64,000 bases of DNA, from assembly GCF_003918875.1 (NCBI RefSeq), contig NW_025767294.1:434001-498000 (forward strand). The letters are read 5' to 3'. The notes beneath the pieces were generated by a model, which saw only the letters and a list, made by a program, of their open reading frames with translations, was not told where the DNA came from and searched no databases. Source of the stretch: Haliotis rubra (taxonomy: Eukaryota). Positions 2,659 to 45,334 of this stretch are shown here, piece by piece. Made by a program: the position numbers and the translations under genes. Position 1 is the first letter of the stretch. Each line of letters opens with the position of its first letter.

Positions 2659-2931
2659 GTGTATACCAATAAACAATACTCTTCATGTAAGTTATTTGAA
2701 TAAAATTGATTAAGTATATACGTGCCATATGTTCTCGTATTAATGCATATGATTGGTGCCTGAATAAGGCTTTAAATTACCGTCACACGTGTGCATTACA
2801 AACAAACACTTTTCTCTATTAGCGTCACCTCAGTACAGCATATGAATAGATTATATATCCCTGTGGGGATTTAGGGCTGGAATGGATCCCAGGACCCTAC
2901 GTTGGTCGTAAACAGGGATCCACCTAATAGG

Positions 2932-3070
2932 AGTGAGTGAGTGAGTTTGGTTTTACGCGGCTTTCAGCAATATTCCGGCAATATCACAGCGGGGTACACC
3001 AGAAATGGGCTTCACACATTGTACCCGTGTGGGGAATCGAACCCGAGTCTTTGTCGTGACAAGCGAACGC
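2932..3070 (-). mobile_element. Family A tRNA-derived SINE, 5' truncated
   Basis: B-box GGTTCGATTCCC, body CACA..GGGTACAATGTGTGAAGCCCATTTCTGG and (CACT)n tail on the minus strand. Confidence 0.9.
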
Positions 3071-3597
3071 TTTACCCTAATCCGGTGGATAGGCTCAACG
3101 GATGCAATTACAGGGTATCAATGTACCCCGATGGCGTGGATATTTTGCATAATATCTATCACTGTGTTTTCCAAACAAGCAACGTTGCACCTGTTTGCTC
3201 GTTCGTTGCTTAACGCCGCTCTATTCCAGTTCTTTGATGGAGTATGGACCAGACACTCCGGTGATTACCATGATGGGCACATTATCTGTTGTGTTTGCTC
3301 ACTGACCTAACTGATCACATTTAAGTAATCATAAAAAAATTATTTACAGTACAGACAAGACTGTTAAAAAGTAAATACAAGTACAAGTCTATATTTACAA
3401 ATGTTTCCAAAGATGGCTCTGCTCATGCAAAGGTTCATGAGATTCTTAAGTCGCTGGAATTGGTCTCGAAGATTTTGCTCGGCCAGGTAAGCATACATTG
3501 CCATGGCATTGTCCATTATTAATGCTACTACTACCGGCCAATGTGTCATCGTCTCTTGCTGGCTACCGGTAAGTCAGGTAACTCTTACCCTAGGTGT

Positions 3598-20200: not shown

Positions 20201-23200
20201 TTTTCGATTTGTGAAAATATATTCTCAAACGGTTATCTATTCACATATTTACACAGGTACTGTTTATGGGAGGCATTCATTCATTTTAGTTTTACATCAA
20301 ATCGTTTTAATGAATTGGCCATTTGTTTTCTTTTCTAAGTTTGGCCCAAACAAATCTCCCCGGAAGGGCCCATGTTATCTCCCGTCCCGGAGTGACCTAC
20401 TACCTGGACACGGCTCACACTGACCTCAGCATCGAGGTATTGATGTAGCCTATGTCATTTATTTATTCATTAAATCAGAGAGAATTCGGAATAAGATTTG
20501 TGGTTAACTGAAGAGTGGATGTAATGCAACAAAACCTTCGAAACTTATTATCGTGCCCCAGACGAGTTAGCTCGTAGATCATAACGTCCATTAGGGGGTG
20601 GGGTGTTTGTGTATGCACCATTGAAACTCTCGTTAGAACGGGTGAAAATGAAGTGTGCACCCCCCTTTTCTCCCCCTCCTAACTAGATCTACACGGGTTG
20701 TACCAATTACTTACATTATTTCCATTCCATAATGACAGCATTTGGCCGAGTGGTTCAACCAAAAGGCTGACGAAGAACTGTCAACACTGAAGTAAGTTAC
20801 CTGTACTGCACCTGTTTGTTGTGTTTGGCGTCTTTTCGCAGAAAGTGACACAGTCTGACGATTACCAACTCATTAAAGATCCTCATCATCGATAATCGCC
20901 CGTTTATGTATACCACAGGCTTCACTATCCCCTTGTGTACTTTGCAGGCTTCATTTGTTAACGTTTCTATCAAAGCCCTTGTGTTGTTATTGTGTCTGGC
21001 TTCCTAATCCCTATTGTACTGTACAAACATCTGCTCTACTTGTATATATGCTCATCCACCCTTATGTTGTTCATCACGTGCTTAATAACTGTTAAATGCT
21101 ACACCGAAACGTCGCTCTCACAGCGATAAAGAATATATTGTTATCCTTCCTTACTGCCCCAACTTCCAAATGCCTCTCAAAAAAGTTAGTCTGTCGAGTA
21201 TTTTCACTTTGTGTAATTCCATAATCATGCGGATGTAAATAACCCTATGGCACATAGATAATTAATGGAATATAAAAACAAAGTTATTAGTCATCCTCCG
21301 CTCAAATTGGTTTTTGTGGGAGAGCTCCTCCTGTCTGTCTACCTCTTTTAAAAAAAGTAACTCACAACTCATTCAATACTTTTCATGTACACACATCAGG
21401 TCAGCATTTTTCCTTCTTTGCTTTTTTGTGTTCCGCTAATATATTTTTAATATTTATCGTATAATGTATTATCAGATGCGTAACATATTTCTATTTGTGA
21501 TTTTTAAAAAGTATCTGAAAAGGCAGTGGATATCTGTCTTATTTCTATTTTATTTTTTATCACATTATTCCTTTTTAATCTAGGATGATTTAATTTTCCT
21601 TATTATTTATTGTTGAAAGTGTATTTGTGTTCATGGTAGATCGAACTATGAAGTAACAATTTACAGAATGCAAAACCCGTTAATGATTCCAGAGGACGTG
21701 TTGCTCGAGTCCTGATTTTCTATGGATCTGAAAAAAGGGATATATGCAAACATATATCGATATTACAGGTGAGTGAGTGAGTTAGGACTCACATCGGCAG
21801 TATCCTAACAGTATCGTGACTAGAACAAGTTATACATTCCTGACACACCCACTCAGAGTAGTATAAACACCTGTGGACAACAGACAGTCCAAACAACTTG
21901 AATGTGACTGATATAAACTAGCATGTAATTTTGAAACTATAGACAGTATGATAAATGCCCGGCTATAGATCGCGAACAACCGAAGGTAGTTGTTGGTCCC
22001 TGCCTGGCGCTCGGCATTAATGGGTACAACAAGGACTGGTCGGCTCGGAGTCAGTATAATGTGTCTGAGTGGGGTATTCATGCTTCACCGCGGCATAATA
22101 TCTCAGTGGGCTAGCACTTTTCAACCTGCTTACGTCTGGGCTAGTACAAGCAGCCGCACATACACATACACCCGCATGCACGTCGTCATATGAGCGAAAT
22201 ATTCTCAAGCACGACGTTAAACCCAATTTCACCTCACCTCACCTGAAGGTAGATCACCATACGGAAGACAAATAGGTACCTTTGCTTCCTGTATGTAACG
22301 TAGCTGGATTTACAACATCACTTCAGCTGTTGGCGATTGTGCTATTTTCAAAACAATTTTATCCAATCTTTTGTGATAATTCAATTTCATTTCAAAGGCA
22401 ATAAATAAATGACAAAGATGTCTATATACAGCCATCGGCAGACAGGAAATAGTCAGTCTTTACGGCCTATGCCAATCCCAATTTCTTAGCAGTGTTACAA
22501 CTATCCTCCATACTCACTGATGTATTTTCTTGTTTTTCCAGCAGAGACTCAAACTGGATGCTGTTATCTTTACAGCCTACGCCAGCCCCACTGAAGACTG
22601 TTCTATAGGTATCATTCATCTTGAAAACACAATTTCGCAAAGACTTTGTATATTTACATCGCACACAAATTCCGCCTGCCTGTTTGTGGCGGCTGATTTC
22701 GATGGCTTCCAAAAGTTTTCTTTTTGTGATATCCTGATTCCCCATCCCTATCCCTCAGAACCATCCTCCATAAAGTCGTATGCTTCATTATTGACTCGGC
22801 CACTTCTAGCACCTCACCAAGCCCTAAATCAATTACGTCTATGTCGGATCCAGATCACCAGATCCGGCTTAGAATTGGTATTCAGCAGCCTATGCTTGTC
22901 GTAAGAGGCGACAAACGGAATCGGGTGGTCACATGTCATCGTATCCCAATTTGGAATATCGATGCTCATGCTGTTGATAACTGGATTGTCTGGTCCAGAC
23001 TAGATTATTTACAGACCACCGTCATATAGCTGGAATATTTCTGAGTGCGGAGTAAAACTAAACTCACTCACTCGAGATCACCAAATATTTTTAAACATGT
23101 TGACAAAATATCTTTCATCTGAGGTAAACATACGCCAGTAAAAATATACATCTCAACAGTACATTCATGTGTAAATAAGAGAACTGGCATAAATATTGTA

Positions 23201-24334
23201 TATGTTGCCGTTTTAATGTAAGTTTAATCAATTTCATGTTATTCCTAAAAGTAAGCTTTGAAGTGATCAAAAATAATTTGAGAATAAGTTTCGCGTCACT
23301 GACAATAGTCGACAATGATTCCCCTCTAGTGTTACAAATAAAGCCACAAATAGATGTCCATTCAGGGCCTGCAGATTTCATTCAGGGCCTGTAGATTTCA
23401 TTCAGGGCCTGTAGATTTCATTCAGGGCCTGTAGATTTTAAAGCCTGCAGGCCATGATGGCCACCTCCCAAATTTTAGTATTGCAAAACACTGAGTGAAA
23501 CTTGAGTCGGCAAATAGTCGACAATGATTGCCCTCTAGTGTTACAAGTAAAGCCACAAATAGATGTCCACTTTCAAACATCATTTTATTCAACTAATTGT
23601 GATGATCCTGATTTTCTTCAACAACACCGGAGTGACTTATTGGGCCACTAACAACGTTGTCTAGTGGGGCTAGCTTACTCAGTCGATGCATGTCAGCGAA
23701 TATTAATTTCGTAGCACGAAGACCTCGTGCTGTCAACCATTGGAGCGTATGCCCCATTCATGATTATTTACAGATTGGCGTCATATTGCTTAACTAATGC
23801 CGAGTATAGAGTTGAAATCAACAGATCAGTCATTGTCTTAAAATGGATAAAGTAGGAGTTCATATTAACTTGGTGCCATTGTATTGTGTCATTTCAGATT
23901 ACATCTATGATAACATCTCCAAAGAGGAACAGTTCCAGAGCGTTCTTACCCTCAAGAAATTCTGGGAAGACAATACTTCCACAACAGACAACATGACAAC
24001 CGAAGGTAAACATGCTGGCCATTCATGTGCGTCGTTTACAGCGAGAAGTTTCCCAGAGGCTCTCATAGCCGCGACAGGTGGGCGTGACCTCAACATACGT
24101 GGCATAGAGGATTATATCTCTCAGCAACAATCTGGCAAACATCGTATGACGTCTTCGGGCGATCATTACAGAGATGAGAGTGTTACGTGGGCATCAACAA
24201 AAGATGGAGTGTGTCTTGATTATCCAAAATTACCAGAACAGGTTAATGACGCCGATCACGTTCAGATTCTGTTTGCTGGAGGTTTCAAGATAATTGGTCA
24301 TGGTCTGTGGTATCTTCAAGGGGAACTATTCTGA
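11295..24334 (+). CDS. FPGS: Folylpolyglutamate synthase-like protein, paralog 1 (13 coding exons, ~571 aa, probable mitochondrial presequence)
   Basis: Exons 11295-11390, 15221-15319, 15561-15679, 16693-16807, 17455-17694, 18140-18217, 19020-19164, 19643-19735, 20339-20436, 20739-20791, 21693-21768, 22542-22608 and 23898-24334 join in phase with no stop. Motifs: [11 protein letters not shown] (P-loop), [33 protein letters not shown]. All introns are GT-AG except intron 8 (AT-AA, see findings). Confidence 0.92.
11686..12240 (+). mobile_element. Two tandem family D retroposon 3' fragments
   Basis: Each ends in CACAATATGGCTGAAATA.TGCCGA...(CACT)n AACACTCACGGA. Confidence 0.7.
12590..12825 (+). 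mobile_element. Family B retroposon heading a composite unit
   Basis: Complete head, body and tail. Confidence 0.88.
12818..13425. repeat. 67-bp minisatellite x~9
   Basis: ACAACCAACCAATGACTTGTATGTGGATTGACTGAAATACTGGATTGTAAATGAAGGTGACACTGTA; same unit at 36357. Confidence 0.97.
13781..13942 (+). mobile_element. Family A tRNA-derived SINE
   Basis: A and B boxes, body and (CACT)n tail. Confidence 0.9.
14430..14830 (-). mobile_element. Family D retroposon fragment
   Basis: Similar to 11686-12000 in the opposite orientation. Confidence 0.55.
18690..18910 (+). mobile_element. Penelope-like retroelement RT relic in FPGS1 intron 6
   Basis: Degenerate [20 protein letters not shown] and [24 protein letters not shown], characteristic of a Penelope-like RT C-terminal region. 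Confidence 0.7.
21769..22340 (-). mobile_element. Family D retroposon fragment interrupted by a family C SINE
   Basis: Tail at 21769-21825; body resumes after 22244. Confidence 0.7.
21990..22243 (+). mobile_element. 5'-truncated family C (Meta-like) SINE
   Basis: Near-identical to 10371-10628; TSD GAAGGTAG on both sides. Confidence 0.9.
22860..23072 (+). mobile_element. Family B retroposon
   Basis: Head, body and (CACT)n tail. Confidence 0.85.
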
Positions 24335-26761: not shown

Positions 26762-29700
26762 TCAGAATAGATCCCCTTGAAGATACCACAGACCATGACC
26801 AATTATCTTGAAACCTCCAGCAAGCAGAATCTGAACGTGATCGGCGTTCTTGACATGTTCTGGTAATTTTGGATAATCAAGACATACTCCATCTTTTGTT
26901 GATGCCCACGTAACACTTCCATCTCTGTAATGATCGCCCGAAGACGTCATACGATGTTTGCCAGATTGTTGCTGAGAGATATAATCCTCTATGCCACGTA
27001 TGTTGAGGTCACGCCCACCTGTCGCGGCTATGAGAGCCTCTGGGAAACTTCTCGCTGTAAACGACGCACATGAATGGCCAGCATGTTTACCTTCGGTTGT
27101 CATGTTGTCTGTTGTGGAAGTGTTGGAGTCTTCCCAGAATTTCTTGAGAGAGAGAACGCTCTGGAACTGTTCTTCCTTGGAGATATTATCATAGATGTAA
27201 TCTGAAAAGACATAATTCAATTACGCCAGATCAATACACACTTACGCGTTTCCTTTTCCAGTTGAAGAAAGCGATCAATCGACTGACTGATTTTAAATGC
27301 CGCACTCCAATATCGACAACGATATTGCAGTGGTTTTGCGGAGGCCTGTAGATAATTAATCCCGTATGCATAGATCTGCAGAATTAAGAAACCCCGACAT
27401 GTACCAACCTAGATAGAGAGAATAACTGCCCAGTGCTACCCATGCAGATACTGGCCTTTGGCAAGAATGGGTTGCTGAAGACTTCTACCTGGATCTACAT
27501 GGGCCGTTGCTTAAAGTGATATCAGATGGTTGACATTCAATTGAGAGATTAGTGAAACACAGAAACCAATCAGTATCAAACATTTATCGAAACAGATTCC
27601 ACAGGCATATAGCTGAAATATTGCTGAGTGCGATATTCAACAGATTCCACAGGCATATAGCTGGAATATTGCTGAGTGCGATGTTAAACAGATTCCACAG
27701 GCATATAGCTGGAATATTGCTGAGTGCGATATTCAACAGATTCCACAGGCATATAGCTGGAATATTGCTGAGTGCGATGTTAAACAGATTCCACTGGCAT
27801 ATAGCTGGAATATTGCTGAGTGCGATATTCAACAGATTCCACAGGCATATAGCTGGAATAGTGCTGAGTGGGATGTTAAACAGATTCCACAGGCATATAG
27901 CTGGAATATTGCTGAGTGCGATGTTAAACAGATTCCACTGGCATATAGCTGGAATATTGCTGAGTGCGATGTTAAACAGATTCCACAGGCATATAGCTGG
28001 AATATTGCTGAGTGCGATGTTAAACAGATTCCACAGGCATATAGCTGGAATATTGCTGAGTGCGATGTTAAACAGATTCCACAGGCATATAGCTGGAATA
28101 GTGCTGAGTGGGATGTTCAACAAACAAATAAACTGTCGCCATCTCCTTTCTTTATCACATCATTACTACCAATATCAGAAGGATTAAAGGAATCAATGTT
28201 GTTCCGTTGTTTGTATCAATACCTGTTCTCGTGAACCAATTATCTACTTTGCTTGTTTATGGGGTATGGAATACCTAGTTTGATGTCACATGCTTATGTC
28301 ATGAATGAATGTTGTTGTTGTTTTGTAAAGATGCCAATACCTGGTAATTCCAATAAACTTGTTACAGTTATTCTGAGCTAAGGATTTCGTAAAATGACTG
28401 GTCAAATTAGTAATCTGTTCATGAACTATTTAGTTACGGGAGGTGGGGTAGTCTAGTGGTTAAAGCGTTGGCTCGTCACGCCGCAGACCCGGGTTCGAAT
28501 CCCTACATGTGTACAATTAGTGAAGCCCATTTCTGCTGTCCCCCGCCGTGATATTGCTAGAATATTGCTAAAAGCGGCGTAAAACCAAACTCAGTCAGTC
28601 AGTCAGTTTAGTTCATGCATACTTATAGTGATTTTACTAACTGACTGAAAGTTTTTGTCACGAAAGTTTCGCGAAACATCATGCTCTGAGTTTTATATGC
28701 CGCTATTGATAAACTCAACAACTGCAAATTGTCTGCGAATGTTACCTTACCTATAGAGCAGTCTTCAGTGGGGCTGGCGAACGGCGTAAAGATAACAGCA
28801 TCCAGTGAGAGTCTATCCTAAAAGAACATCAGTGGGTATGTTAGTTTTGTATTTACTGTGAACATTCTGTCATGTAAATTACGAAGTGTTAGTTTATCAT
28901 GGCACAGATCAAACATGTTGAAACCCAAGAGTACTGTCATGGTCAAGGATCCTAATCACTGTGATTTGGGGATTCAATTCCAGTCGAACAGTCCTTAAGG
29001 ACACATCAGGCGTTCTTTCTTCATATTAACTGATTTTGATTCAATGATTTTATATTTTATCACTGTGGGAACATTGTGTGATATAGGTTCCATGCTATCT
29101 GTCACCCGTTGCCATAATTGGATTGTGGTTGATAGCATATAATCGGTTCCAAATGCATGGATTAATGATCACTAGAATGTCTGGTCTGAGTAAGTGATGA
29201 AAGAACGCCATGTCCAGAATCTCATGTTCATACCATTGGCAGCACCTGTGGGGAGTCGGGCTTTGATATAGGTCACCTGCAACCTGTGACCTGTGATCGA
29301 AACTGAGGACATGCATGCGTGGATGATTTTCACGGGATTGTTTGGACCAGATTCGATGCCTTAGAGATCAATGCCATGTATATTATAGGTAACACGATCT
29401 ACATAATGTGCTGTACATGTTATGTAATAACAACACACTTTGGTTATTCGTTTGATTGATGTTCCTTCATCAGAAATTCTTTGACAAATCCTCTACCTGG
29501 TACCCGAAGACTCAACGACACATTCTTGTTGATACTTTTACAATTTCATCATTCGACATGGCCATCCTTTGCGACGTTTGGGTGTAGACACTAACATCTG
29601 GGTTAAAGCTGGACTTCAGTAACTGACATCTTGTGTAGGGAGGAGAGGGGAGGGTGATGGCACGGCGAACTAGTCGACCAACTTAGTAGTAAGTCCAGGC

Positions 29701-32700
29701 TTTTGGACGTTCTTCCATAACATGTCACAAGGTATCTGTAGTGTTGACATCTTGTGTAGGGAGGAGAGGGGAGGGTGATGGCACGGCGAACTAGTCGACC
29801 AACTTAGTAGTAAGTCCAGGCTTTTGGACGTTCTTCCATAACATGTCACAAGGCTATCTTTAGTGCTGACATATTGTGAAATATGTTCACCGGTGGTCAT
29901 GAGATTGCTCTAATTGGTCCTGATTGGAGTGCTGGGTAAAGGTTTGTCACAGCCAAAGCAGGGGTAACATATTCACCCTGCACAATCACTGACCCGTAAC
30001 TGCTAACGCCCCAGTTGGGTAAGTGGGAATGTGCCGGTGTAAATCACTGGATTTTCCAGTCAGACTCGATTATTTACAGACGGAAGTCACATAACTTCTG
30101 TGAGAAGTTGGGGCAGTAAGGAAGGATAACAATATATGGATGAACAACTTCTTTTTTGCTGTGAGAGCGACGTTTCGGTGTAGGTTCTAACACTGTTATC
30201 AAGCAAGTGATGTCATATCGCTGAAACATTGCTGAAACATTGCTGAAACATTGCTGAAACATTGCTGAGTGAGGTGATAATCAACAAACAACAAACATGA
30301 GGTCACGTGGCCAGGTACCCGTGAAGATCTGGTTTAGAATATTGATCTTCAGTAACCCATGCTTGTCGTAATAGGCGACTAACGGGATCGGGTGGTCAGC
30401 CTCGCTGACCTGGTTGACACATGTCATCGGTTCCCAATTGCGCATATCGATGCTCATGCCGTTGATCACTGGATTGTGTGGTCCAGACTCGATTATTTAC
30501 AGACCGTCGCCATATAGCTGGAATATTGCTGAGTGTGGTGCAAAACTAAACTCAACTCACTCACGTCGCCAGGACGACGATTATTCCAGTTGAGCGAATA
30601 AAAACACAGACAGTTGCTTCAAGAGACCTGTAAGGCAGGTTTGTAGGTAGCATGTTGACGCTTTCTTCGTCGTTGTGTTGACAAACAATGTCGAAATATT
30701 AAAAGTTGTACAAAATGAATACACTCGCGTCATTGTTATGTATAATAAGGTAAACCAGGTGGGACGTTGCTGGGTGCGGCGTTGAACAACAAACCAACCA
30801 ACCAACAAACAAACAAACAAACAAACAAACAAACAAATCTTTCAGAAACTGGTCAGTGGCCATATTGAAGATGCACATGTAACACCTCAAACACAGACGC
30901 AACGATAATGCTGAGTTGATGTCTGTCCAATAAAGTATTGCCCTCAGGAGTTACAGCTGTTTACATAATTATGCAATATGTGTAGTTGAATCTGTGGCAC
31001 ACAATTGCATACTTGATGTAGATGGCTCCTGGCTCACTGTGACACTGCTACAAGGAGATTGTGTAACGAGGACGTTCTACACATATCGAAGTCAGGTCAG
31101 GATGAACACACACGGTATGTCATCCAAATATATGTTGACAATTTCTAAGTGATAATGGACCATTCAAAGTCACCCATTTGGTCCCTAAGGGTGGGGTTGC
31201 AGAATGGTTAAAGCATTCGTTGATACAGTAAAGTCAGTGACGACACACTGATTACTAAACTTGTTTCAGCTCAGCTTGCGTTACCGGTAGATTCTGGTCC
31301 TGTTGTAGCTGTCCACCCATCTCACCCCTCTTAGCCTATCGGAGATAATGTCAGCGCTTATGTCAGAACGGCCATGTTGTGCTGCCTCGAAAGGTGAAAA
31401 CGTCCATGGATGTTTTTCTCCAACGTGACATTATATCCCTTATTTTCTCCAAAGCAGAATATAATCTTGAACGTGATCGTCGTTGTAACGTACACCATTC
31501 AAAACACCATTAAGATTAATGAGTTTTGTTCACCCATAACTTACGATTCTACACCATGCCATCCAAATGTCATCCCGACGTGAAATAACCGTCCAGAACC
31601 GCCCAGTCTTAAATGCCAGCGTTCATATCCGCCAGTATGCATGCTTACCTTCAATATCGACAAATGTTTGCATTGATCCCTTCCGTCAGCTCCGTAGAAC
31701 ATCATGACTCGAGCAACACGTCCTCTGTAATGTGAAAGGGGGCGGTGGGTAAGCCTAGTGGTTAAAGCGTTCGCTCGTCACACCGAAGAGCCGGGTTCGA
31801 TTGACCAAATGGGTACAATCTGTGAAGCCAATCTCTGGTGTCCCAGGCTGTGATATTGCTTGAATATTGCTAAAAGCGCCGTAAAACAATGCTCACTCAC
31901 TCACACAGTCACTATAATTGGAAACGGGTTGGTATTCTCTGATATGTGACTGAAGTATTTAAGCATATTTCGACTCGCATAATGACATGAATACACGGGC
32001 AATGTAGTTTTCAAAAACAAATAATCTTACTTCCACTTTGTTTCGGTAAACCGGATTTAAACACCAGTTGGAACCAGACATATACATCTTCTGCCCTTTG
32101 AGATGTATTCACTGAATCACAAATACAAAATGTACCATGGCTTTCATTACACCAGTTATATATATACACTCATTATAAACAGAGGTGAACAACTATTCTT
32201 TAATAGCGACAAAACACACTACAGTCAAGCACCGTTGTGTCGAACTCTGATAACTCGATATCTCGGCTGTCTCGATATAACATCTCGGTCCCGGCAAAAT
32301 CCTTCACAATTTATCATTATTCAAGATCTTTTAACTTGACACGGATGGCTCGATATTTCGGATATCTCGATATAATTTCATGGTCCCAACAAGCAAAATT
32401 ACCCTTTTAAGTCGATATTTGCAAAGAAACGCGATATTCAGCTCCCTTTCATGGGCAAGTATCCCTCTGAACTGAGGTTGTTTCCATACGTTTACACACG
32501 GGGCGGCATGAATCAACGGGGTGCGGTAGTGTAAACTAATTAGTGCTAATTGAGTTGAAGGTGTCACTTGTTTGTTATTCAGTTAGGATTAATTAAGAAG
32601 GATTTAATTAGGAAGTCCTCACTGTTACGACTAAGCAGTTCTGATAACGGATAATAGTTTCGAATCAAAACATATTGAGCAGCGTTTTGTTTTCTTTCAT

Positions 32701-35700
32701 AGTGACATGTGATGATATGCCCTGGTTGGATATCTCGAAGTTCGGATAACTCGATATTTTTTCCCTAGTCCCATGAATATCGAAACACTGGTGCCCGACT
32801 GTATTTGAATATATATTTGATGTCTGTGTACAAATTTCATAAAATGAATGTTCAATGGTTTGTGAATCTGGCTAAAAGATACGTGGCTAGCTGACGGAGA
32901 CTGTTTCTTTGTCTAACTTCGTTTCAACGTGGGATGAACTTCTACCACACTGTACACTCATATTCGGTGGCATTGTCGTACACGTGACTTACTTCAGATT
33001 TGACCGTTCTTCATCAGCTTTTTGGTTGAACCACTCCGCAAGGTGCTGCCATAAATGAATAGAAAGACTGAGTGAGTTCAGTTATACGCCGCACTCAGCA
33101 ATATTCCAGCTACGTGGCATCGGTCTGTAAATAATCGATTCTGGACAAGACAATCCAGTGATCAACAACATGAACATCGATCTACGCCATTGGGATACGT
33201 TGACATGTGTCAACCAAGTCAGCGAGCCTGACCACCCGATCCCGTTACTCGTCTCTTAAGACAAGCATGGGTTACTGAAGATCACTTCTAACCCGGATCC
33301 TCACGGGTAGAATAGAAATAACGTAGGTAATAGGTGCAGTTGACAGAAATTGTCAAGCAGGTGAGACAATGTCGTTTCAATCTCGATTGTGTGTTCTCGT
33401 ACATGTATAGGTTTAAGGCTAATCATGTCCTACCAACACACTTTCGCAAAGGACCCGTGAAGATCCGGGTTAGACAATTAGCAATTCAGCAATTAGTGCT
33501 TGTCACAAGAGGCGACTAACAGGATGGCGTCGTCAGGCTTGCTGACTTGGTTGCTGCATGTCCCCCAACTGTGCAGCCCGATGCTCATGCTGTCAATCAC
33601 TGGAGTGTATGGACTAGATTTGATTACTTCCAGAGCGCCGTCAGATAACTGGAGAATTGCTGAGTGTCGCGTTAGTCACTAAACAAACACACCTTCGCAA
33701 AGTTATTATTCTTTCCAAATCTCAAAACTCTGAAGATTTATTTGGTAGCAATTATACTGAAATCACCAACAACCTTCAACCATAACCAGATTGCAGCGAA
33801 GTGCCCTACTTGCCATGTCAGTTAATAGACAATGAATATGTACTATACATTAGGAACAGAATAATTATCTTAATATTTATTCATGAGGACGCAAATCGTG
33901 ATGCAAAGTCAGGAAATGCTCGGATGTAAATGAGGATTGCTGGGCTACAGTTTCAGGCCAAGGAATGTGTCATCCTATTTGAATATGATTGCCTGGGTTC
34001 GCTTTCTCGACGTCGACAAGAACACATCACAGTGACATTGATTCAGTGTCGCAGACCAACTGAAGGCAGCACTTATTCATGTGTTCAAACGCCGAAGACC
34101 CTGGTTCGATTTCCTACATGGGTACAATGTGTGAAACCCACTTCTGATATCCAGCTAAAACCAGAGGTTTTCACTGATTCTCATAAGACGTGGGGTAGCC
34201 TTATGGTAAAACCTTTCGACGGTTTTATTCCGTACATGGGTACAATGTATGAATCCCATTTCGTGTGCCCCCCGCCGTGATATAGCTAAAATAGCACTTA
34301 ACGGGCCGTAAAACACTACTCACTCACTTACACCCGTTAGCTGTTGCTTAACGCCGCACACAGTTGAATGCACCAATCAGTCTACGGTTCATGAGTACTC
34401 AACAAGACCAATGATTTACATTATGGGCAACGACTGTATGGATACGAAAATAAGAAATCAACCACGAAACCGAGCCTAACAGCGTGGTGGGCGAACTGTT
34501 TAAGGCGCCAGGCTAGTGATCCAGCGAGCTTGAGGTGTCGGGATCGAGCCCACTTGTGGCTGGGTGTAAAAATCTTGGAGTCAGCTTTGTGTGCACACTC
34601 TTTCAGTGTTGTCACAAACCCTAGCGTACAGTACACAACCCTGTGCACTTAAAAGAAGCCACGAATCCGTTGGTATATGATCAGATGGTGGACACATGAA
34701 TACGTGCAAACACCTAGTTGCGGGTACAGCAACGTGCAGTAAACTTGGACAAAGTACTGTGACTATGTGTCCCAGTCCATCCAGCTGCGAATGGGTACCT
34801 AACATGGCCTTGATTGTTAGCGCTATGAGCATACCTAGTGTGGAGTTTGGCGCTATATAAAATGGACACATTATTATTATTATTACCTCATAAGGATGGG
34901 AAAGCCACAATAACTCGGTGCACCTAGTGGTTGCAAGAGTTGTATGATCCCCAGGGAGTTGGTTTAAAAATATTTTATTGTCCAAAAGACAACGGGATTA
35001 GGCACAAGTGCACCACTTGATAATACGATGTGCCGTTGAGATTGGCATCCAATGGTCGAGGGAAAAATACCAGCGCCTTGAGCATCTACTAGTTGAGTGG
35101 ATATGTGCGCTATATAAATATCCTATAATCCTATAATAATAAACACCTGATCCCAAACATCTCTCAGAACCACCTTCTCAGTCTCGAACCAAACCTTAGT
35201 TTGTGGCAATAACATTGGTTTTCTGTCCAGTTAACCACAATGAATATTCAATATTCTCTCTAATTTCATGATCGAATAAATGACAGAAGCTGCATCAATA
35301 CCTGGATGCTGAGGTCAGTGTGGGCCGTGTCCAGGTAGTAGGTCACCCCGGGACGGGAGATCACATGGGCTCTTCCGGGGAGATTTGTTTGGGCCAAACT
35401 TAGAAAAGAAACCAACGGTACAATGCAAATAAACAAGTTGACTTTACACTAACTTGCCTGAACGTACCGAACGCTATAGGTATAATGCGTATAACTACTT
35501 ATATTTATGTATAATTTATGTACTCTAATATTGCAGTTGCATTAATGGTGTTTGGTTGGCTGATCAAGCAATATTTCCTTGTGTTTACGTTTTCACAAAC
35601 TGAAGTAGATATTGTGCAATGTCCACTGGCGGACGAAGTGTTTCTTGTGAGGTCAATGGGCGCTTCATTCTGTGACTGAAGTCGAATTGTTGTCGTACGG

Positions 35701-38700
35701 TGTTAATGTTTCGATAAGCAGTCTGTGAAATTAAATTTGTTGATATTGTTATAACAAAAACCATTTCTATATCTTATTTTAGCGTTAGTCTATTAAGAAC
35801 AAAATCTTGAAGCCAATGCTTAAACCATTATAGTTTTGTTTAGTCTGTAAGTATGATGTAAGCTTGTGGATGTCCAATTGATATCATTCTTGGATGACAA
35901 AATATTTATACTTATCATTCATCATGCTGTCAGTCAGTTTGAATCCTTGGGCCTTCTGTGACCATTCGCGTCCTTTCTTCATGGCCGAGGAGATGGCCTC
36001 ATCACCAGATGGCTGTTCCACCCCTGTTATATGAAGTATATACCAATATTGAAGCATACAATAACACTTATTGTTGGGCTATGAGATTATGAAAATATTA
36101 TATCTATACATGTCTAAAACGTGTTGCAGACCGGCGAAGATCCGGGTTAGAACTGATCTTCAGTAACCCATGCTTGTCGTAAAAGGCGACTAACGGATCG
36201 GGTGGTCAGGCACGCTGACTTGGTTGACACATGCTGTCGTATCCTAATTGCGCAGATCGATGCTCATGCTGTTGACCATTTGATTGTCTGGCCCCAACTC
36301 GATTATTTACAGACCGCCGCCATATAGCTGGAATATTGCAGAACGGGGCGTTAAACAACAACCAACCAATGACTTGTATGTGGATTGACTGAAATACTGG
36401 ATTGTAAATGAAGGTGACACTGTAACAATCAACCAATGACTTGTGTGTGGATTGACTGAAATACTGGATTGTAAATGAAGGTGACACTGTAACAAGCAAC
36501 CAACGACTTGTATGTGGATTGACTGAAATACTGGATTGTAAATGAAGGTGACACTGTAACAACCAACCAATGACTTGTATGTGGATTGACTGAAATACTG
36601 GATTGTAAATGAAGGTGACACTGTAACAACCAACCAATGACTTGTATGTGGATTGACTGAAATACTGGATTGTAAATGAAGGTGACACTGTAACAACCAA
36701 CCAATGACTTGTATGTGGATTGACTGAAATACTGGATTGTAAATGAAGGTGACACTGTAACAACCAACCAATGACTTGTATGTGGATTGACTGAAATACT
36801 GGATTGTAAATGAAGGTGACACTGTAACAACCAACCAATGACTTGTGTGTGGATTGACTGAAATACTGGATTGTAAATGAAGGTGTCACTGTAACAAGCA
36901 ACCAACGACTTGTATGTGGATTGACTGAAATACTGGATTGTAAATGAAGGTGACACTGTAACAACCAACCAATGACTTGTATGTGGATTGACTGAAATAC
37001 TGGATTGTAAATGAAGGTGACACTGTAACAACCAACCAATGACTTGTATGTGGATTGACTGAAATACTGGATTGTAAATGACGCTGACATTGTGGCAATC
37101 TAAACAACAGACCAGGCGCTGTAGTATTTTCTGAGTTGATAAGTGTACTCAATACGTACCAATACCTGAAACGTTTTACAGTGTGATAGTATATTTATTG
37201 CTACATGGCAGTGTTGTAATTGAAACAGCAAATTACCAACAGATGTGTTCTGTATAAATGCATTCATTAACAGGGAATCATTACACACGCACTAAACCGT
37301 GTTGCACATTGATTTACCCATTCTGAACTGGTGTTCATGTAATAACAAGAATATATGACAACACGGATGTAAACGTGAGATATGCATTCATTAACAGGGA
37401 ATCATTACACACGCACTAAACCGTGTTGCACATTGATTTAACCATTCTGAACTGGAGTTCGTGTAATAACAAGAATATCTGACAACACGTATGTAAACAT
37501 GAGATATCATGACCTTCTCTTGTGGAGTAGTTATAGTTATAACTCAGCATATTATTGAACTGTACGCCATTTACATTGACAGACAAAATCCACCTGCTTT
37601 TACCACAACAGAGTCTTTAATTAACCATTCGTTTTCTGACTGACTGACTGAGTTTGGCTTTACGCCGCTTTTAGCAATATTCCAGCAACATCACGGCGGG
37701 GGACACCAGAAATGGGCTTCACACATTGTACCCATGTGGGGATTCGAACCAGGGTCTTCGGCGTGACGAGCCAACGCCTTAACCACTAAACTACCCCACC
37801 GCCCACCATTCGTTATCACTGACACAACTTATTGAACTATGTTACACCGTATTACCTTGTCCCAGAGCTTCCAGCCATATGTTACACATCTGTAGTGCTA
37901 GGGAGGCATTGACCTGCTGCACGTGACCAGGAATCCCTAACCTGATTGGGTCAGGTCCACCGTCGTATGTAGCCAGTGGCGGGGCTACATATAGCTTAGT
38001 CTACAAAACAGTTGATATAATGCAAATGCATTTCAGGAAAGACTGACAGTGTTTGTAAACCCGAGAGAGAAAGGTGACGAGTTGTTTAGTGGGTTAGTGA
38101 GTAAGTATTGTTTACGCCGCTTTTAGCAATATTCCAGCAATATCACGGCTGGGGACACCAGAAATGGGTTTAGCACATTGCACCCATGTGGGGAATCGAA
38201 CTAGCGTCTCAGCGTGACGAGCGAACGTTTTAACCACTAGGCTACCTAACCGCCCTGACAAGTTCTTGAAGGGGCAGCGACTTTATACATTAACGTAATG
38301 ATAAAAAAAAATCTGAAGATAAGCACGTTTCGTGTTCACTATATGTGTTCCGTTCAGCTGAATGGAAATACGAAGGTGAGATAAGATGAGATTATAAACG
38401 TATAAACGTTTAAGAGTATTGCTCTTATAGAGCAGCTGTGTGATTGGCTGTTTGATCCAGTCTGAGTGAGTGAGTTTAGTTTTACGCCGCTTTCAGCAAT
38501 ATTCCAGCAACATTACGGCTGGGATACCAGAGAGGGCTTCACATATTGCACCCATGTGGGGAATCGAACCACAAGACTATCCCCAAATCACTCGCCAATA
38601 TGCAAAACACATGCATTACCCCTATTTCTTCAGCTCTGTTTTCTAGAACTTTCATCACACGTGGGTGTTGAGGAGCTGTCACTGCTGGAGTTCCTGGCTG

Positions 38701-41700
38701 AAATATAGAATCTCGACGTTGACGCTGACAGTCATGCCTGGTTTATGGTTACAACAGACCTTATTGATTTATCTTTGATGAATCCATGTCTTTGCAAGTG
38801 TTTCGCCTGGTAATGGCTTGTGTGTTAGTCGATTGAAAAGATGCGGTGGGATTTTCTTTGCTTTTCGTGTAAGTATTCCAGATATATGACGGCAGTTATA
38901 ACTGGAATATTGCTGAGTGTAGCGTTAAACAGCAAGCAAATACTCACGTGGAATCTTTTTTGCGAACATAAGCATTTTCAGTTCCGGCGATTTAATTGTA
39001 TTCCATTTAGCAACTTACTTTAAACACACCTCCCTTCTACCAGGCCACGGGTTATAAAGTGTTATATGCTGAAATATACTCACTCATAGCCTTGACAATC
39101 ATCTACACCAACCAGTTTAATGGTTTGAAGAAACTTTAGTTATTTTTACCTAACTCAAGAGACAATGTTTTTGAAAATCATGATACTGGAATCGATAGTT
39201 GTGAGTCGAAAAAAATAAATGAGTACATAAGTTTGGTTTTATGCCGCTTTGCAACATTTAATCACCAGATATTGGCCGCACGTGTCAATAGAACCAGGAC
39301 CTTTGGCGTGACGAGCAAACGCTCTAACCACTAGGCTTCCAACTGCTTCTCGAAGACAATTAAGATTGGCTGGTTACAATGATGTGTCTCATCACCCGCA
39401 AATACAGTGTTTTTACGGACATTCGTCAATTAAAAAGTCATTCACATTTGTGATATTCATTCAAGTATGTTTCACAATTGTTCATTGAATATTCAAATAT
39501 ACGCTCTGTCAGTTCCCAAGGATTTAATCTATTACATTCAGAAACGTACTTTAAACACACCTCCCTTGTGCCAGGCCACGGATTCTAAAGTGTTACCCAG
39601 GTATTGGACATGGTCCACATGCAGCGAGGTAATTCCACATACAGCTGGTCTTTCAACAATGTTGGTGCAGTCGTATTGACCTCCTATTCCAACTTCAAGA
39701 ATCAGAGCATCAACTCCTTGCGCAAGGAAGAGGTCGAACGCTAGTAGAGTCAGAAAGGCAAATGCATGTGGCATATCGTCTTCTGAGTCCTGTAAAGAAT
39801 ACATTGATTTTTATGCTATTAAGTATATATTTCCCGGGATGCATGTGTTGAACGTTGAGCTTGATTACTTCCAGACCAAAGGCAAATGCATGTGGCATAT
39901 CGTCTTCTGAGTCCTGTGAAGAGGGGAGATAGTATTCTTTCTTTTCCTGATAACAAGTAAATATGTGTTTAGCTTGATTATTTCCAGACCATCTTGACGT
40001 GTCTACAACGAATGTGGAAACATTCATTTTTATGATATCTTTCTGAGTAATATATTTAAGAAATAGTTCACGGAATATATATGTTGAACTTTGACATTAA
40101 AAAATTCTAGGCCATCGTGATATGTCCCGTATTTTGTGGATTCCTTCTTTGAACAATTACTCAAATATTCAAACATTCTCCTCGAATTGTGAATCTCTGT
40201 ATCTGTTCAAACGACAGGCCATTCGTCACCACTCGCCTCTTTCCCTAACCTCCAAGAAGACTCGTCCCCCTCTCGATGCTTGTTATGTGCGAAAATACGA
40301 CAAACCAATCAGAACGCGCGTAAATGACTGCGGTGCTTTGGTAAAAATAATCCCGAGTACTTAAATCGTTTATGGCATTATGTCATTGTTTAAAAAATCA
40401 TGAACAATATATATCGTCATATTGAAAGCAAAAGAACTTAGCTAACATGATTGTGCTGCCTGTTATGAAGTTTTCGATAAGAATCATGCGATTGACGGTG
40501 AGAGATTCAAATACATGCACGTGCGTTTGTTGACATTACGGCTCTCATGTTTCCACTGAGGGTATTTCTGACGATGTTGCGGGCTTGCTATGGAGATTGT
40601 ACGTGCGCTTCCAACAATTTTAGGAAATATAATTATAAATCGCTACGCGTTTCAAAACAATAATATTAGACATATATCTGCATGTAACTAATCAACTTTA
40701 ATCTTTAACATTGGACATATATTTCACATCTTTGGGAATATTTTAGTCTGACTCTTTTTTTGTAGTCATTCATATATTTTTCACCGAATTCATTCAAAAT
40801 TCCACTTTGGGTATAACAGCAAGGTTACACGAATGTTCAGTTTGAGACATATTTTCAAGTCATTTTTGAGTTTCTGCTTTGGGATTTAATGTAGCTTTAA
40901 TAAATGTTATTTACATATTTAATAAAACAAATCCCATTTGTGATTATCGAACCCTATTTAGAAATATGATTGGAAATATAAGGTGAACATCTGGTAATAA
41001 TTACGTCAGAATAAGTCTGTAACAAATATGTTTTTCTCCTTCTTTTAGTTGTATCAAAACGGTTTAATTCTTCAAAACCATAAACACCAACACAATGTAT
41101 GATTACTTCGGTGATATTAAGTACCATTGGAATCAAACAAGAATAGAGTTATCGTTCCTGTTTGAAGAAGTTCTGATGTTCATGCGCCAATATGAAATCC
41201 TTCCAGAGGGGCACGAGTCGCTATTCGGCTTGTCCCGGAATAACACGAGTTGGTCACGAATGGCCCGACTGAAGTTTTACTATTCACGGGCTAGCGGGCC
41301 AGTGGTTATTTCGCACACTGTTGTAGTACAGTCGTGTGTATTTGTTTTCCACAATTAAAGTTAACGATATTAGATCATCAAACACTCGAGGCAAAGGGTT
41401 AATTTTCTGTCCAAATTCCCTCTATTTGATTCTGTAACATAAATCTGACATCAGACTGGAATGCATAAAGAAACAGATCAGGACTGCTATACACACATTC
41501 GTGTTTCCTTAACAATATGCAGTGAACTGAGACTGTGTATATCAATACCCTTAATTTGAAGAGTTTGTTGTAAATGTCCCAGAAATGGTCCTTGAAGAGA
41601 CTCGTCCCAACAGGCTTGCCGTCACACAGGAACCTCTCAGTGATGCTCACCAGATGAGGGGAACTATGCAGGACAAAAGACACATATTAAACAATGAGAA

Positions 41701-44700
41701 AACATACAGACAGACAGACATACAGATTTATTCAATAAAGAGGCCTTGGGCCCATGATACATGCTTTCTTGGTGATATCTATAATAATTTGGGTGAGAAT
41801 ATAGCTGCAGAGCAGGCACAGGTATGCAAATTTGTAACAAATATCGTATGGACAACAAAATGCATTTATAAATTGTTGGTTTTAACTGATGAGCCTTACT
41901 GTGTACCAGAAATAACTGAAGGGCTAAATGCTTTGGGTTAATAGTATTGAGTCAAAGTTTCTATACTTTGTAAAAACACATACGTATACTACGCATGGAT
42001 AGAGACAATACCGTGTACCAGTTATAACTGCAAGACTAAGTTCTTATGAATTAATAGGGTTGGCTCTCAGTTTACATACTTCATATGATGCATAGTGATG
42101 CAATCATGAATAGACTAAAATTTTAGCTTGTAAATTATAAAGGCCATTACAGGTTTTCTTGTTGACCACCGTGATAACATGTGTAGCATGTGTGCTAATG
42201 TCTGTGCCACAATTGTCCGTGTCGTGCTTGATCTCAAACAATGACGAATCAGGTCAGAATCGATCTTCAGCAACCCATGCCTGTCATAAGAGGCGACTAA
42301 CAGCATCGAGTGGTCAGGCTCGTCGACCTCGTTTACAAATGTTAACGTATCCCATTTGCGTTGATGGATGCTTATGTTGTTGATCACTGGATTGCCTGGT
42401 CCAGACTAAATTATTCCCACACCGCTGTCATATAACTGGAATATTGCTGTGTGCACGTTAAATAGCAAATAACAAACATGCCTGACCTCACCTGTATACG
42501 CCAGTCTTGTAACCATGGTGACGAAGAATGTTTTCACAAAAAGCGCTTGTTGAACCTTTTCCTTTTGTGCCAGTGATGTGGAGGACGTTGAGTTTCGAAA
42601 GGTCGGACACCTGCAGGAAGCAAGACCAGACCTCTTAACATCAACCACTTCCATTCGTATCAGAATACTCGTGAAGATCCGGGTTAGAAATGATCTTCAG
42701 TAACCCATGCTTGTCGTAAGAGGCGACTAACGGGATCGGATTGTTAGGCTTGCTGACTTGGTTGACACATGGCATCGTATCCCAATTTCGTAGATCAATG
42801 TTCATGCTGTTGATCCTTGGATTGTCTGGTCCAGACTCGATTATTTACAGACTGCCGCCATATAGCTGGAATATTTCTGAGTGCGGCGTATAACTAAACT
42901 CACTCACTCAGTCGTATCAGAAATATTCAGTTGCCATCAGTATACACGGTTACCAATTTCCGTCCCAATCCAGTCAACATGTTCTACTTGCAGCAGACTA
43001 CTGGTTTTGTGATTCAAATGATTCGCTGGGCAACTTATGTCTGTGTGCAGCGGCCACATGTTGCACTGCCATTTGCAAATCTTTAGGATGTCCGTGAAGA
43101 TACGGGTCAGAATTGGTCTTCAGCAACCCATGCTTGTTTTTATATTGTATTGTTCAAATGTTTTAGATTTAATTACTAGTTTTGAATTGATATTTGTGAT
43201 AATCTAGTTGTTTTATTGTTCTTCGTTGACAGGTTTTTATAATTGACCTTAAATAATTATTAATCTATAACCTGATTTAGTCACGATATGGCTGAATTAT
43301 TGTCTATGTGACTGTAAATTTTACTTCACTCACTCACTCATCGTATCCCAATAGCATAGATTACGCTGCTCATCAATGGATTGTCTGGTGAAGACTTATA
43401 TATTTACAGACCGCCGCCATATAGCTAGAATATTGCTGCGTGTAGCGTTACACAACAAACCGACCAACAGAAGTTAATTGTTTATACAAAGTCGAACCAG
43501 AGGAAATCGTCACACAGGTGACACGTTTTCAACAAAATACCCATCCCAATGCCCTTTGCCATTCCTTGATAGGCGTGGTCAGGTTTCGCGACGTCTTAAT
43601 GAACGTCAGCCTGACACCTCGTGACAGGTTTGGCAGTGAAACGATTATGATGTAGGTTGGAATCGCCATGACTGACAAACACCCACATCGTATTGTGCAA
43701 GGAAGTGTCACTGGGTAGTACTTCCGGGTCAACATACTGACACCCTTTGTTGTTCCGTTTGCAAAACGTGTGGGTGGATGTTTGGTTTCTGATTTCCAAA
43801 TTCGTTTATGTTTATGGCACATATCTAACTAGTAACTAATATCTCTGACAAGTTTGGAAATTTCATCAGTTGTATAATATATCCTACCTCTTATTGAAAT
43901 AAACATGCATGGTCGAGGGCGTAAATGGCAGTGCAATAATAGCTAATTGAAACAGACTGAATGATACATATTTTGTGATTCATTCGATAAAATAAACTCC
44001 TTACATTCTGTCCCATCCGCTTCATATACTTCTTCATGTGACGGATGTTTGCGAGGTAGTTCAAGCCTGGAGTATGCAGACCATGCCAAGTTTTCATGGT
44101 TTCCTGAAATAATAGCCAAGAAACCGAGTATGATCTTTATCAGACATATAGGTTTCATATGCATTTCGACAGCTTATCAACTATAGTGCCAAGTGTGATT
44201 ACAAACCATTTAACATGGTTAAATCGTCGAGGGGCTCATTCATCGATTTCGGTGGGCGGTAGGCTAGCCTAGTGGTTAAAGCGTTCGCTCGCCACGCCAA
44301 AGGCCGGGATTCGATTCCTCAATTTGTAAAAGCCAATATATGATGTCCCCCGCCGTCATATCGCCGGAATATTGCTAAAATTGGCATAAAACCCAACTCA
44401 CTCACTCATTATCTTACAGGACCTTCACTTTTTCCTGTAAGGACCTTGCACGTTTAACCATGACGCTGGGGTAAAACATAACAGATAATTCTGATCAAAA
44501 AGCGTTAAAAACCAAACTCTCCAATACCGACTGGACCTGTCAGTTCCCGTTTTCGGCACGTAAGTCGCTATAAAGACTAATAACTATCCTGCTCTTTCAA
44601 TGGTTCCTTCCGTAGCCTGGGTCCACTTAACACTTGTTTTATTCAGTTGTTGTTTAAAGCCGCACTCAGCAATATTTCATTTGAATACATGACACGTTTT

Positions 44701-45334
44701 ATTGATAACAATTGCTTTTTTATACTTTACAGCAGAATTAGCTCTGAAACGTGTTTTTTAATGTTGAGACAACGTAGTGTGAATTTAGAGGATAGACAAC
44801 AAAAAGCGACACATAATAGCAATATAATGAGAATATGAAACAACTCATCACCTGATAAAGGGGCAAGAATTAGCTCTGAAACGTTGTGTTTTTTAATGTT
44901 GAGACAACGTAGTGTGAATTTAGAGGATAGACAACAAAAAGCGACACATAATAGCAATATAATGAGAATATGAAACAACTCATCACCTGATAAAGGGGCA
45001 AGAATTAGCTCTGAAACGTTGTGTGGAGAATGAAACAGAAGTTGTTGTCCATAAAACGTGTCATGTATTAATGTTCGTCCAACTTCTAAATGCCTTTCAA
45101 AATCTTCACTATTTCGTTATCCCTTGCTTTTGGATGTTGAGACAACCTAGTGTGAATTTAAAGGATAGACAACAAAAGCGACACATAATAGCAACATAAT
45201 GAAAATCTGAAACTCACATCGTATGATACAGAATGATGTCGGATCTGTCGTCCTAGTTTATGCTCACGTGCATGTGTTTTAACCCAAGGACCACGTAACA
45301 ATGTTCTCATCATTTTCGCTCTTCGTTGTAGCAT
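26762..45334 (-). CDS. FPGS: Folylpolyglutamate synthase-like protein, paralog 2 (13 coding exons, ~584 aa, mitochondrial presequence)
   Basis: Exons (minus) 45334-45218, 44103-44005, 42610-42492, 41663-41549, 39789-39550, 38697-38620, 38000-37856, 36023-35916, 35399-35302, 33045-32993, 31724-31649, 28817-28751 and 27201-26762. Phases match paralog 1 exon for exon, lengths match except exons 1, 8 and 13, and the same motifs are present. Intron 8 is AT-AA. Confidence 0.92.
27589..28122. repeat. 48-bp minisatellite x11 containing the family B tail
   Basis: AACAGATTCCACAGGCATATAGCTGGAATATTGCTGAGTGCGATRTTM; accounts for the 16-aa repeat ORFs. Confidence 0.97.
28438..28606 (+). mobile_element. 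Family A SINE, (CAGT)n-tail subfamily
   Basis: Full-length with A and B boxes. Confidence 0.9.
29624..29870. repeat. ~122-bp tandem duplication
   Basis: Two near-identical copies. Confidence 0.9.
30318..30563 (+). mobile_element. Full-length family B retroposon
   Basis: ACCCGTGAAGATC head through to the (CACT) tail. Confidence 0.92.
31738..31905 (+). mobile_element. Family A SINE
   Basis: Full-length; sits next to the acceptor of FPGS2 exon 11. Confidence 0.9.
32222..32801. mobile_element. Tc1/mariner(pogo)-type MITE
   Basis: TA|CAGTCAAGCACC ... GGTGCCCGACTG|TA imperfect TIRs with a TA TSD and subterminal CTCGATAT repeats. Confidence 0.85.
33068..33308 (-). mobile_element. Full-length family B retroposon
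   Basis: Flanked by AATAGAAA duplications. Confidence 0.92.
33452..33685 (+). mobile_element. Diverged family B retroposon
   Basis: Starts GACCCGTGAAGATCCGGGTTAG. Confidence 0.8.
34475..34885 (+). mobile_element. tRNA-headed SINE with a Deu/Nin-like body and an L2-type tail
   Basis: B-box-like GGGATCGAGCCC; GTCAGCTTTGTGTGCACACTCT; CCAGCTGCGAATGGGTACCT; tail GCGCTATATAAA..(ATT)n. Confidence 0.6.
36130..36365 (+). mobile_element. Family B retroposon heading the second composite unit
   Basis: Full-length. Confidence 0.9.
36357..37080. repeat. 67-bp minisatellite x~11
   Basis: Same unit as 12818-13425. Confidence 0.97.
37637..37805 (-). mobile_element. Family A SINE, (CAGT)n subfamily
   Basis: Full-length; ACCATTCGTT present on both flanks. 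Confidence 0.92.
38095..38255 (-). mobile_element. Family A SINE
   Basis: Full-length. Confidence 0.88.
42250..42475 (+). mobile_element. Family B retroposon
   Basis: Body and tail. Confidence 0.8.
42668..42910 (+). mobile_element. Full-length family B retroposon
   Basis: TCGTATCAGAA TSD on both flanks. Confidence 0.93.
43090..43468 (+). mobile_element. Family B retroposon interrupted by a family D tail (43135-43340)
   Basis: B head, then D segment, then B body and tail. Confidence 0.75.
43560..43730 (+). mobile_element. Degenerate Tc1-like transposase fragment
   Basis: [19 protein letters not shown] resembles the Tc1 motif DRFGGGSVMVWGGI...KT. Confidence 0.45.
44253..44408 (+). mobile_element. 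Family A SINE
   Basis: A and B boxes plus tail. Confidence 0.85.
44686..45100 (+). mobile_element. Penelope-like terminal-repeat relic, amplified in tandem (~135-bp units)
   Basis: CTGATAAAG..GAAACGTT hammerhead-like core; a short inverted copy lies at 44686-44720; related fragments at 21070 and 30100. Confidence 0.5.

Follow-up and report, generated by a model that had tools for sequence, protein, structure and literature searches.

A probable U2-type intron with AT-AA ends in folylpolyglutamate synthase-like genes of Haliotis

In the catalytic spliceosome, an intron's first nucleotide and its last make a non-Watson-Crick G-G pair, while the branch A is the partner of the penultimate A (PMC11585973, PMC1557818). 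Pairs that preserve this contact, such as the A-C pair of AT-AC introns, are tolerated instead of G-G (PMC11585973, PMC1557818). Here we describe intron 8 of two folylpolyglutamate synthase (FPGS)-like genes, paralogs 1 and 2, found in a 64,000-nucleotide (nt) stretch of the Haliotis rubra genome (contig NW_025767294.1, positions 434,001 to 498,000), referred to below as the window and numbered from its first letter. This intron begins with AT and ends with AA. It is the sole AT-AA intron of either paralog, the remaining 11 introns being GT-AG in both. We consider it probable, at roughly 0.68, that intron 8 is a U2-type intron whose ends changed from GT-AG to AT-AA in a fast-evolving, Haliotis-specific FPGS-like family. 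The intron and the exons that border it are as follows, a slash marking a splice border here and throughout.

35400-35915, minus strand: intron 8 of paralog 2; 516 nt, AT...AA, phase 1, splitting a Gly codon (G/GT).
19736-20338, plus strand: intron 8 of paralog 1; 603 nt, AATG/ATAAGA...TTCTAA/GTTTGG.
35916-36023, minus strand: exon 8 of paralog 2; 108 nt.
19643-19735, plus strand: exon 8 of paralog 1; 93 nt.
35302-35399, minus strand: exon 9 of paralog 2; 98 nt, coding for the junction Gly and 32 residues.

Paralog 2 reads ...AGC ATG ATG AAT G/ATAAGTATAAAT...GGTTTCTTTTCTAA/GT TTG GCC on the minus strand. Paralog 1 reads ...GCC ATG AAA AAT G/ATAAGAATATTT...TTTTCTTTTCTAA/GT TTG GCC on the plus strand, with borders at 19735/19736 and 20338/20339. 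An earlier note on this DNA had placed an AT-AA intron in paralog 2 at 35400-35915, and these limits proved exact. The difference in exon 8 length between the paralogs (108 against 93 nt) was measured in both gene models. The intron interiors (516 against 603 nt), said to align poorly, share 61% identity across 432 alignable positions, with large insertions and deletions. The terminal adenosines that the note saw kept in both paralogs are present in eight further copies from H. cracherodii, H. rufescens and H. asinina. Thus A stands at +1 and at -1 in 10/10 copies from four independently assembled Haliotis species, which upholds the note's argument against sequencing error or neutral decay. 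Five full-length RefSeq proteins (three from H. cracherodii and one each from H. rufescens and H. asinina) were mapped exactly onto their genomes. For each of them AT-AA is the sole intron 8 junction that reproduces the protein, and all other introns are GT-AG. Two more H. rufescens copies join the ten-copy set. The length of intron 8 ranges from 223 to 2932 nt across copies, and invariant interior columns make up 26% of the gap-free columns among the seven shorter, alignable copies. That ten copies keep A at both ends over such an interior excludes chance and sequencing error. Compared with the other introns, conservation of the intron 8 ends is above average and no outlier. That some lengths (516, 603 and 261 nt) are multiples of three was considered as a meaningful feature and set aside as coincidence, other copies measuring 604, 223, 427 and 367 nt. 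A scan of positions 10000-46000 against Rfam gave no RNA family within or near intron 8.

The origin of the unusual ends can be approached from homologous genes. A canonical FPGS is also present in abalones and is about 42% identical to the AT-AA family. A maximum-likelihood tree unites the AT-AA genes in a single clade, with canonical abalone FPGS as its sister (support 98/95); the stem of this clade is very long, at 1.67 changes per site. The homologous intron, at the same position and phase and in the same Gly codon, is GT-AG in canonical abalone FPGS (AATG/GTTAGT...TATCAG/GTTTG), in Gigantopelta and in Crassostrea virginica. AT-AA is therefore the derived state. The comparison indicates that G became A at both the first and the last position of what had been a GT-AG intron, and it places both changes on the long stem branch, before the divergence of the copies and of the species. 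The sequences likewise identify the AT-AA genes as a fast-evolved duplicate family of the abalone lineage with at least three loci.

The splice signals around the changed ends were compared with those of 88 GT-AG introns from eight genes of the AT-AA family. The sites in paralog 2 are as follows.

35910-35918, minus strand: 5′ splice site of paralog 2 intron 8, ATG/ATAAGT; 6/8 matches to CAG/GTAAGT at positions other than +1, including -1G, +2T and +5G.
35400-35420, minus strand: 3′ end of paralog 2 intron 8; 76% C/T over -20 to -4, then TCTAA/G.

Across copies the 5′ site is ATG/ATAAG followed by A, C or T. Leaving +1 aside, it agrees with the U2 consensus at 5 to 6 of 8 positions, the mean for the GT-AG introns being 5.14. 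The bases -1G, +2T, +3A, +4A and +5G all agree with a U2 5′ site, and +1 is A. The pyrimidine tract, scored as C/T over -20 to -4, reaches 0.76 in paralog 2 and 0.88 in paralog 1. It is among the strongest of each gene's introns, and in paralog 1 it is the strongest. At -3, each of the ten AT-AA copies has a pyrimidine (T or C), as do 86/88 normal acceptors. A possible branch A in paralog 2 is a candidate at -20 (35419). The termini themselves are AT...AA in the ten copies, not the GT...AG, GC-AG or AT-AC of U2 introns. Since minor introns with non-canonical ends most often have AT-AA (PMC10639083, PMC1557818), the distinction from a U12-type intron removed by the minor spliceosome matters here, and minor introns are relatively numerous in molluscs (PMC10639083). 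However, ATAAGW matches the U12 5′ box ATATCCTT (/RTATCCTT) at only 4/8 positions and is devoid of TCC. The U12 branch box TCCTTAAC is expected about 10-20 nt from the 3′ end of an intron that has no pyrimidine tract, whereas the best match in intron 8 (5-6/8) ends 2-4 nt before the intron 3′ end and the tract is strong. Moreover, the ancestral intron is an ordinary GT-AG intron beginning GTTAGT or GTGATT. By sequence, intron 8 is not of the U12 type, and we regard a U12-type AT-AA intron as extremely improbable.

The choice of junction was then weighed against other pairs of ends that keep the reading frame. Joining ...AAT G to GT TTG... restores Asn-Gly-Leu. The junction residue is Gly in 179/193 aligned FPGS homologues and Ala or Ser in the remainder; Asp and an extra residue are found in none. 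As the earlier note had pointed out, paralog 2 carries a canonical alternative, AA/GTATAA...CTAAG/T, which is in frame but replaces Gly with Asp-Asn. It is specific to the paralog 2 copy; paralog 1 lacks this GT, again as claimed, and has GA in its place.

35910-35911, minus strand: alternative donor GT of paralog 2, at intron +5/+6; weak, TAA/GTATAA, with the AG at 35400/35399 as its partner.

In this shifted register the donor lies 4 bases downstream, the acceptor AG straddles the mapped 3′ border (A from the intron, G from exon 9), and the spliced joint would be ...AATGATAA-TTTGG. Both dinucleotides are thus available in paralog 2, in frame and without stops. An A at +1 of a 5′ splice site often activates a neighbouring GT, which also speaks for this junction. 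However, the donor matches the consensus at only 3/8 positions other than +1, in the lowest class of the 88 introns, and an AAG acceptor occurs in 2 of them. The shifted donor is GT in paralog 2 alone, GC in two C copies and GA in the remaining seven; a second intron position that is A, C or T across copies is unlike real 5′ sites. The C-type copies have GGA for GGT at the junction, a change that is silent solely in the AT-AA register and would turn Asn into Lys in the shifted one. Use of the shifted junction would swap the conserved Gly and insert a residue, and the H. rubra RefSeq model does not use it, reading instead into intron 8. That paralog 2 splices in this way, with AT-AA unused or minor in that copy, is therefore unlikely, some use of the weak alternative being possible.

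A second candidate pairs the AT donor with an AC located 18 nt upstream of the AA end, which in most copies would give a U2-type AT-AC intron and add six residues. A-C is a documented compensating pair, and an in-frame AC without stops is found in 7/10 copies. It is missing from the other three AT-AA copies, paralog 1 and H. asinina having CC. Where present, it sits in a CTGAC-like motif that resembles a branch site, upstream of the pyrimidine tract, which would become coding. The product would carry Asp and a six-residue hydrophobic insert where 179/193 homologues have Gly and no insert. Finally, the RefSeq models took AA, although AT-AC is an accepted pair. The intron as mapped ends in AA, not in the AC of a type II AT-AC intron, and we hold the upstream AC to be a highly improbable acceptor.

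Removal of intron 8 in frame is further suggested by the downstream exons. Exons 9-13 are open and in frame in 8/8 complete gene models. Upstream and downstream of intron 8 alike, the pairwise ratio of non-synonymous to synonymous substitution rates (dN/dS) comes to about 0.2-0.4, with dS up to 0.74; for one recent pair (Hcra_A-Hcra_B) the downstream dN/dS is 0.61. The pN/pS ratio of exon 9 is 0.14 across copies. These values indicate that the exons downstream of intron 8 are under purifying selection. In paralog 1, where open reading frames were listed and to which the start-codon check was limited, the frame leading into exon 9 begins a few codons inside intron 8, without an ATG. Open frames, low dN/dS and, in paralog 1, no ATG feeding exon 9 are together strong, if indirect, evidence that exons 9-13 are translated in the frame of exon 8. 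An alternative is that intron 8 is not productively removed and that transcripts end within it, yielding a protein of about 360 residues that lacks the C-terminal domain. The truncated read-through RefSeq models of H. rubra and H. rufescens speak for it, and splicing of AT-AA may be inefficient. The eight open gene models, a dN/dS mainly of 0.2-0.4 and the low pN/pS of exon 9 stand against it, since open, selectively constrained exons 9-13 need in-frame translation from the upstream exons. Retention as the sole outcome is thus quite unlikely; it may occur side by side with splicing.

Public sequences were searched for the junction itself. A search with 10 kb of paralog 2 returned seven sequencing runs, all without an RNA record. 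In four of them, compared with paralog 2, introns and exons are covered equally and the exon 8-exon 9 joint is absent; these four runs are therefore DNA. Among the differences listed between runs and window, none falls at the ends of intron 8. A word search for transcript-derived fragments with a 68-residue junction peptide gave no matches, a fragment search with residues 240-420 of an H. cracherodii protein matched only the truncated H. rubra model, and metagenome contigs, scanned for exact matches to the spliced junction, gave none. As a separate observation, the best DNA matches of runs X5-X7 to positions 32900-38800 of the window are about 5-7% different in unique intron sequence, and these runs may come from another abalone species or a divergent haplotype.

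Several of these points, with others from annotation and the literature, weigh against a U2-type AT-AA intron. No RNA read, complementary DNA or transcript-derived protein over the junction was found among the runs, proteins and metagenome contigs searched, and paralog 2 holds the in-frame GT-AG alternative described above. The five RefSeq models that contain the junction may have been built on protein alignment and not on RNA. Three other RefSeq models, from two species, break off at intron 8 or are divided there: XP_046544917.1 of H. rubra, and XP_048241436.1 and XP_048245708.1 of H. rufescens, the downstream half of the latter being annotated apart as XP_046362310.2. The U2 spliceosome tolerates unusual first and last pairs less than the U12 spliceosome does (PMC2831892), so that a conserved U2-type AT-AA intron would be unusual. 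In the literature searched, AT-AA is reported for U12-type introns only (PMC1557818, PMC10639083). On the side of annotation, the H. rufescens proteins retrieved comprise one copy spliced as AT-AA and two truncated ones, a mix which hints that transcript evidence, and not protein similarity, decided the AT-AA models.

If intron 8 is a U2-type AT-AA intron, its splicing could proceed as follows. U1 and U6 would still bind the 5′ site, which fits the consensus outside +1 (ATG/ATAAGW), and the strong pyrimidine tract would bring in U2AF, making up for the absent terminal AG at early recognition. At exon ligation, the intron's two terminal nucleotides would meet in a non-Watson-Crick A-A contact that substitutes for G-G, as A-C does in AT-AC introns of the U2 type. 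Given an A at +1, the AG one base further down would be a mismatched partner, which is perhaps the reason for the use of AA. The spliced message would then join ...AAT G to GT TTG..., with Asn-Gly-Leu restored. The acting spliceosome, the A-A contact and the actual junction in RNA are what we infer from these features.

RNA editing would be another way to reconcile the ends with the major spliceosome. ADAR would edit both terminal adenosines to inosine, and the spliceosome would see IU...AI, which would act like GU...AG. In human, U2-like AT-AG and GT-AA sites that undergo editing have been documented (PMC4176328). This possibility was considered by folding seven copies with 60 nt of exon flank on each side, as minimum-energy predictions only. 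The predicted folds have no long duplex near either intron end. The last A is largely unpaired. The first A is held in short helices (4-9 bp), and its partners change from one copy to the next. Nor does the intron interior show a conserved block that is complementary to the ends, and two efficient edits would be required in each copy. Editing is thus, on predicted structure, an unlikely route to splicing. We find it very unlikely that splicing is gated by editing, with both terminal adenosines converted to inosine before the major spliceosome removes the intron. If it were, ADAR activity would set the balance between the full-length enzyme and the truncated protein of about 360 residues.

The two genes of the window are arranged convergently.

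26762-45313, minus strand: FPGS-like paralog 2; 13 exons, with an intact 577-codon frame when intron 8 is taken out as AT-AA.
11295-24334, plus strand: FPGS-like paralog 1; 13 exons, with an intact 571-codon frame, convergent with paralog 2.

Comparison of the window with itself revealed 13 exon blocks conserved in inverted order between its halves, and the exon borders of both genes were carried over from orthologous gene models. Exon 5 served as the query of a profile search, and a word search then reached homologues among RefSeq proteins; those in four abalone species are labelled folylpolyglutamate synthase, mitochondrial-like. The H. rubra protein XP_046544917.1 (250 residues) is identical to the paralog 2 exons, then runs into intron 8 and stops. 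The exons of the window give a weak match to the Mur ligase middle domain. The orthologous full-length proteins score 295 and 284 bits with the FolC profile TIGR01499, above its curated cut-off of 162.65, as members of the FPGS/FolC family (Mur ligase superfamily), and the alignment is unbroken over the intron 8 junction. A convergent pair of family loci is found both in this H. rubra window and in H. cracherodii. In the latter, at locus L001, the last exons are repeated with 100% identity 3′ of the gene (30082-30144 and 31953-32378) and annotated as a 167-residue uncharacterised protein, reflecting a duplication that is either very recent or a product of assembly.

Other features of the window concern repeats and assembly. 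The introns of paralog 2 contain broken partial copies of exon 5 on the minus strand, at 39013-39063 and at 39867-39932; stop codons interrupt one of the two. Tandem arrays with a 67-nt unit, 96-98% identical to each other, lie at 12816-13428 inside paralog 1 intron 1 and at 36357-37093 inside paralog 2 intron 7. An array with a 48-nt period is located at about 27590-28122, between the 3′ ends of the convergent paralogs. Two abundant families of short interspersed repeats have dozens of copies at 70-90% identity, mainly intronic (for example 2931-3077, 12592-12814, 37638-37784 and 42671-42893). An assembly gap (runs of N) is present at 2278-2658.

Five public RefSeq models already contain the AT-AA junction. 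Our literature search found no abalone paper on intron 8 or on the FPGS-like family. It found no description of a U2-type AT-AA intron either; the classic mutational studies of first and last pairs lay outside that search. In the literature searched, the A-A combination of first and last nucleotides is documented only for the minor spliceosome. If confirmed by RNA, intron 8 would be a U2-type intron, natural and stable in evolution, with A-A in place of G-G, and it provides a ready test of how strict the major spliceosome is at exon ligation. It would also show a route by which such a double change can be fixed, namely the duplication of a gene and, after it, a long branch of fast evolution. 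In practical terms, intron 8 breaks automatic annotation, including the model of the window's paralog 2.

Among known systems, the U2-type AT-AC (type II) introns, such as those of SCN4A/SCN5A and TAF2 (PMC1557818), resemble intron 8 in having A at +1 of a good U2 5′ site with G at +5. They also share with it a pyrimidine tract, great rarity and conservation among orthologues and paralogues (PMC1557818). However, their last nucleotide is C and the A-C contact is documented, whereas intron 8 ends in A and an A-A contact is presumed. U12-type AT-AA introns, such as that of RASGRP4 (PMC1557818), have the same terminal dinucleotides as intron 8. Unlike them, intron 8 has neither the ATATCCTT 5′ box nor the TCCTTAAC branch box, carries a strong pyrimidine tract and is of U2-type GT-AG ancestry. 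The A-to-I edited AT-AG and GT-AA sites, for instance in ADARB1 (PMC4176328), likewise present a genomic A where a G-like base is needed. Intron 8 differs from these in that both ends are affected, no duplex is predicted and the intron is a constitutive coding one rather than an alternative site. Finally, the GA-AG introns of FGFR genes (cited in PMC4176328) would be comparable, should the copies that bear GA use the shifted register; there, however, the shifted donor TAA/GAATAT is a poor match to the consensus, and the position varies between A, C and T.

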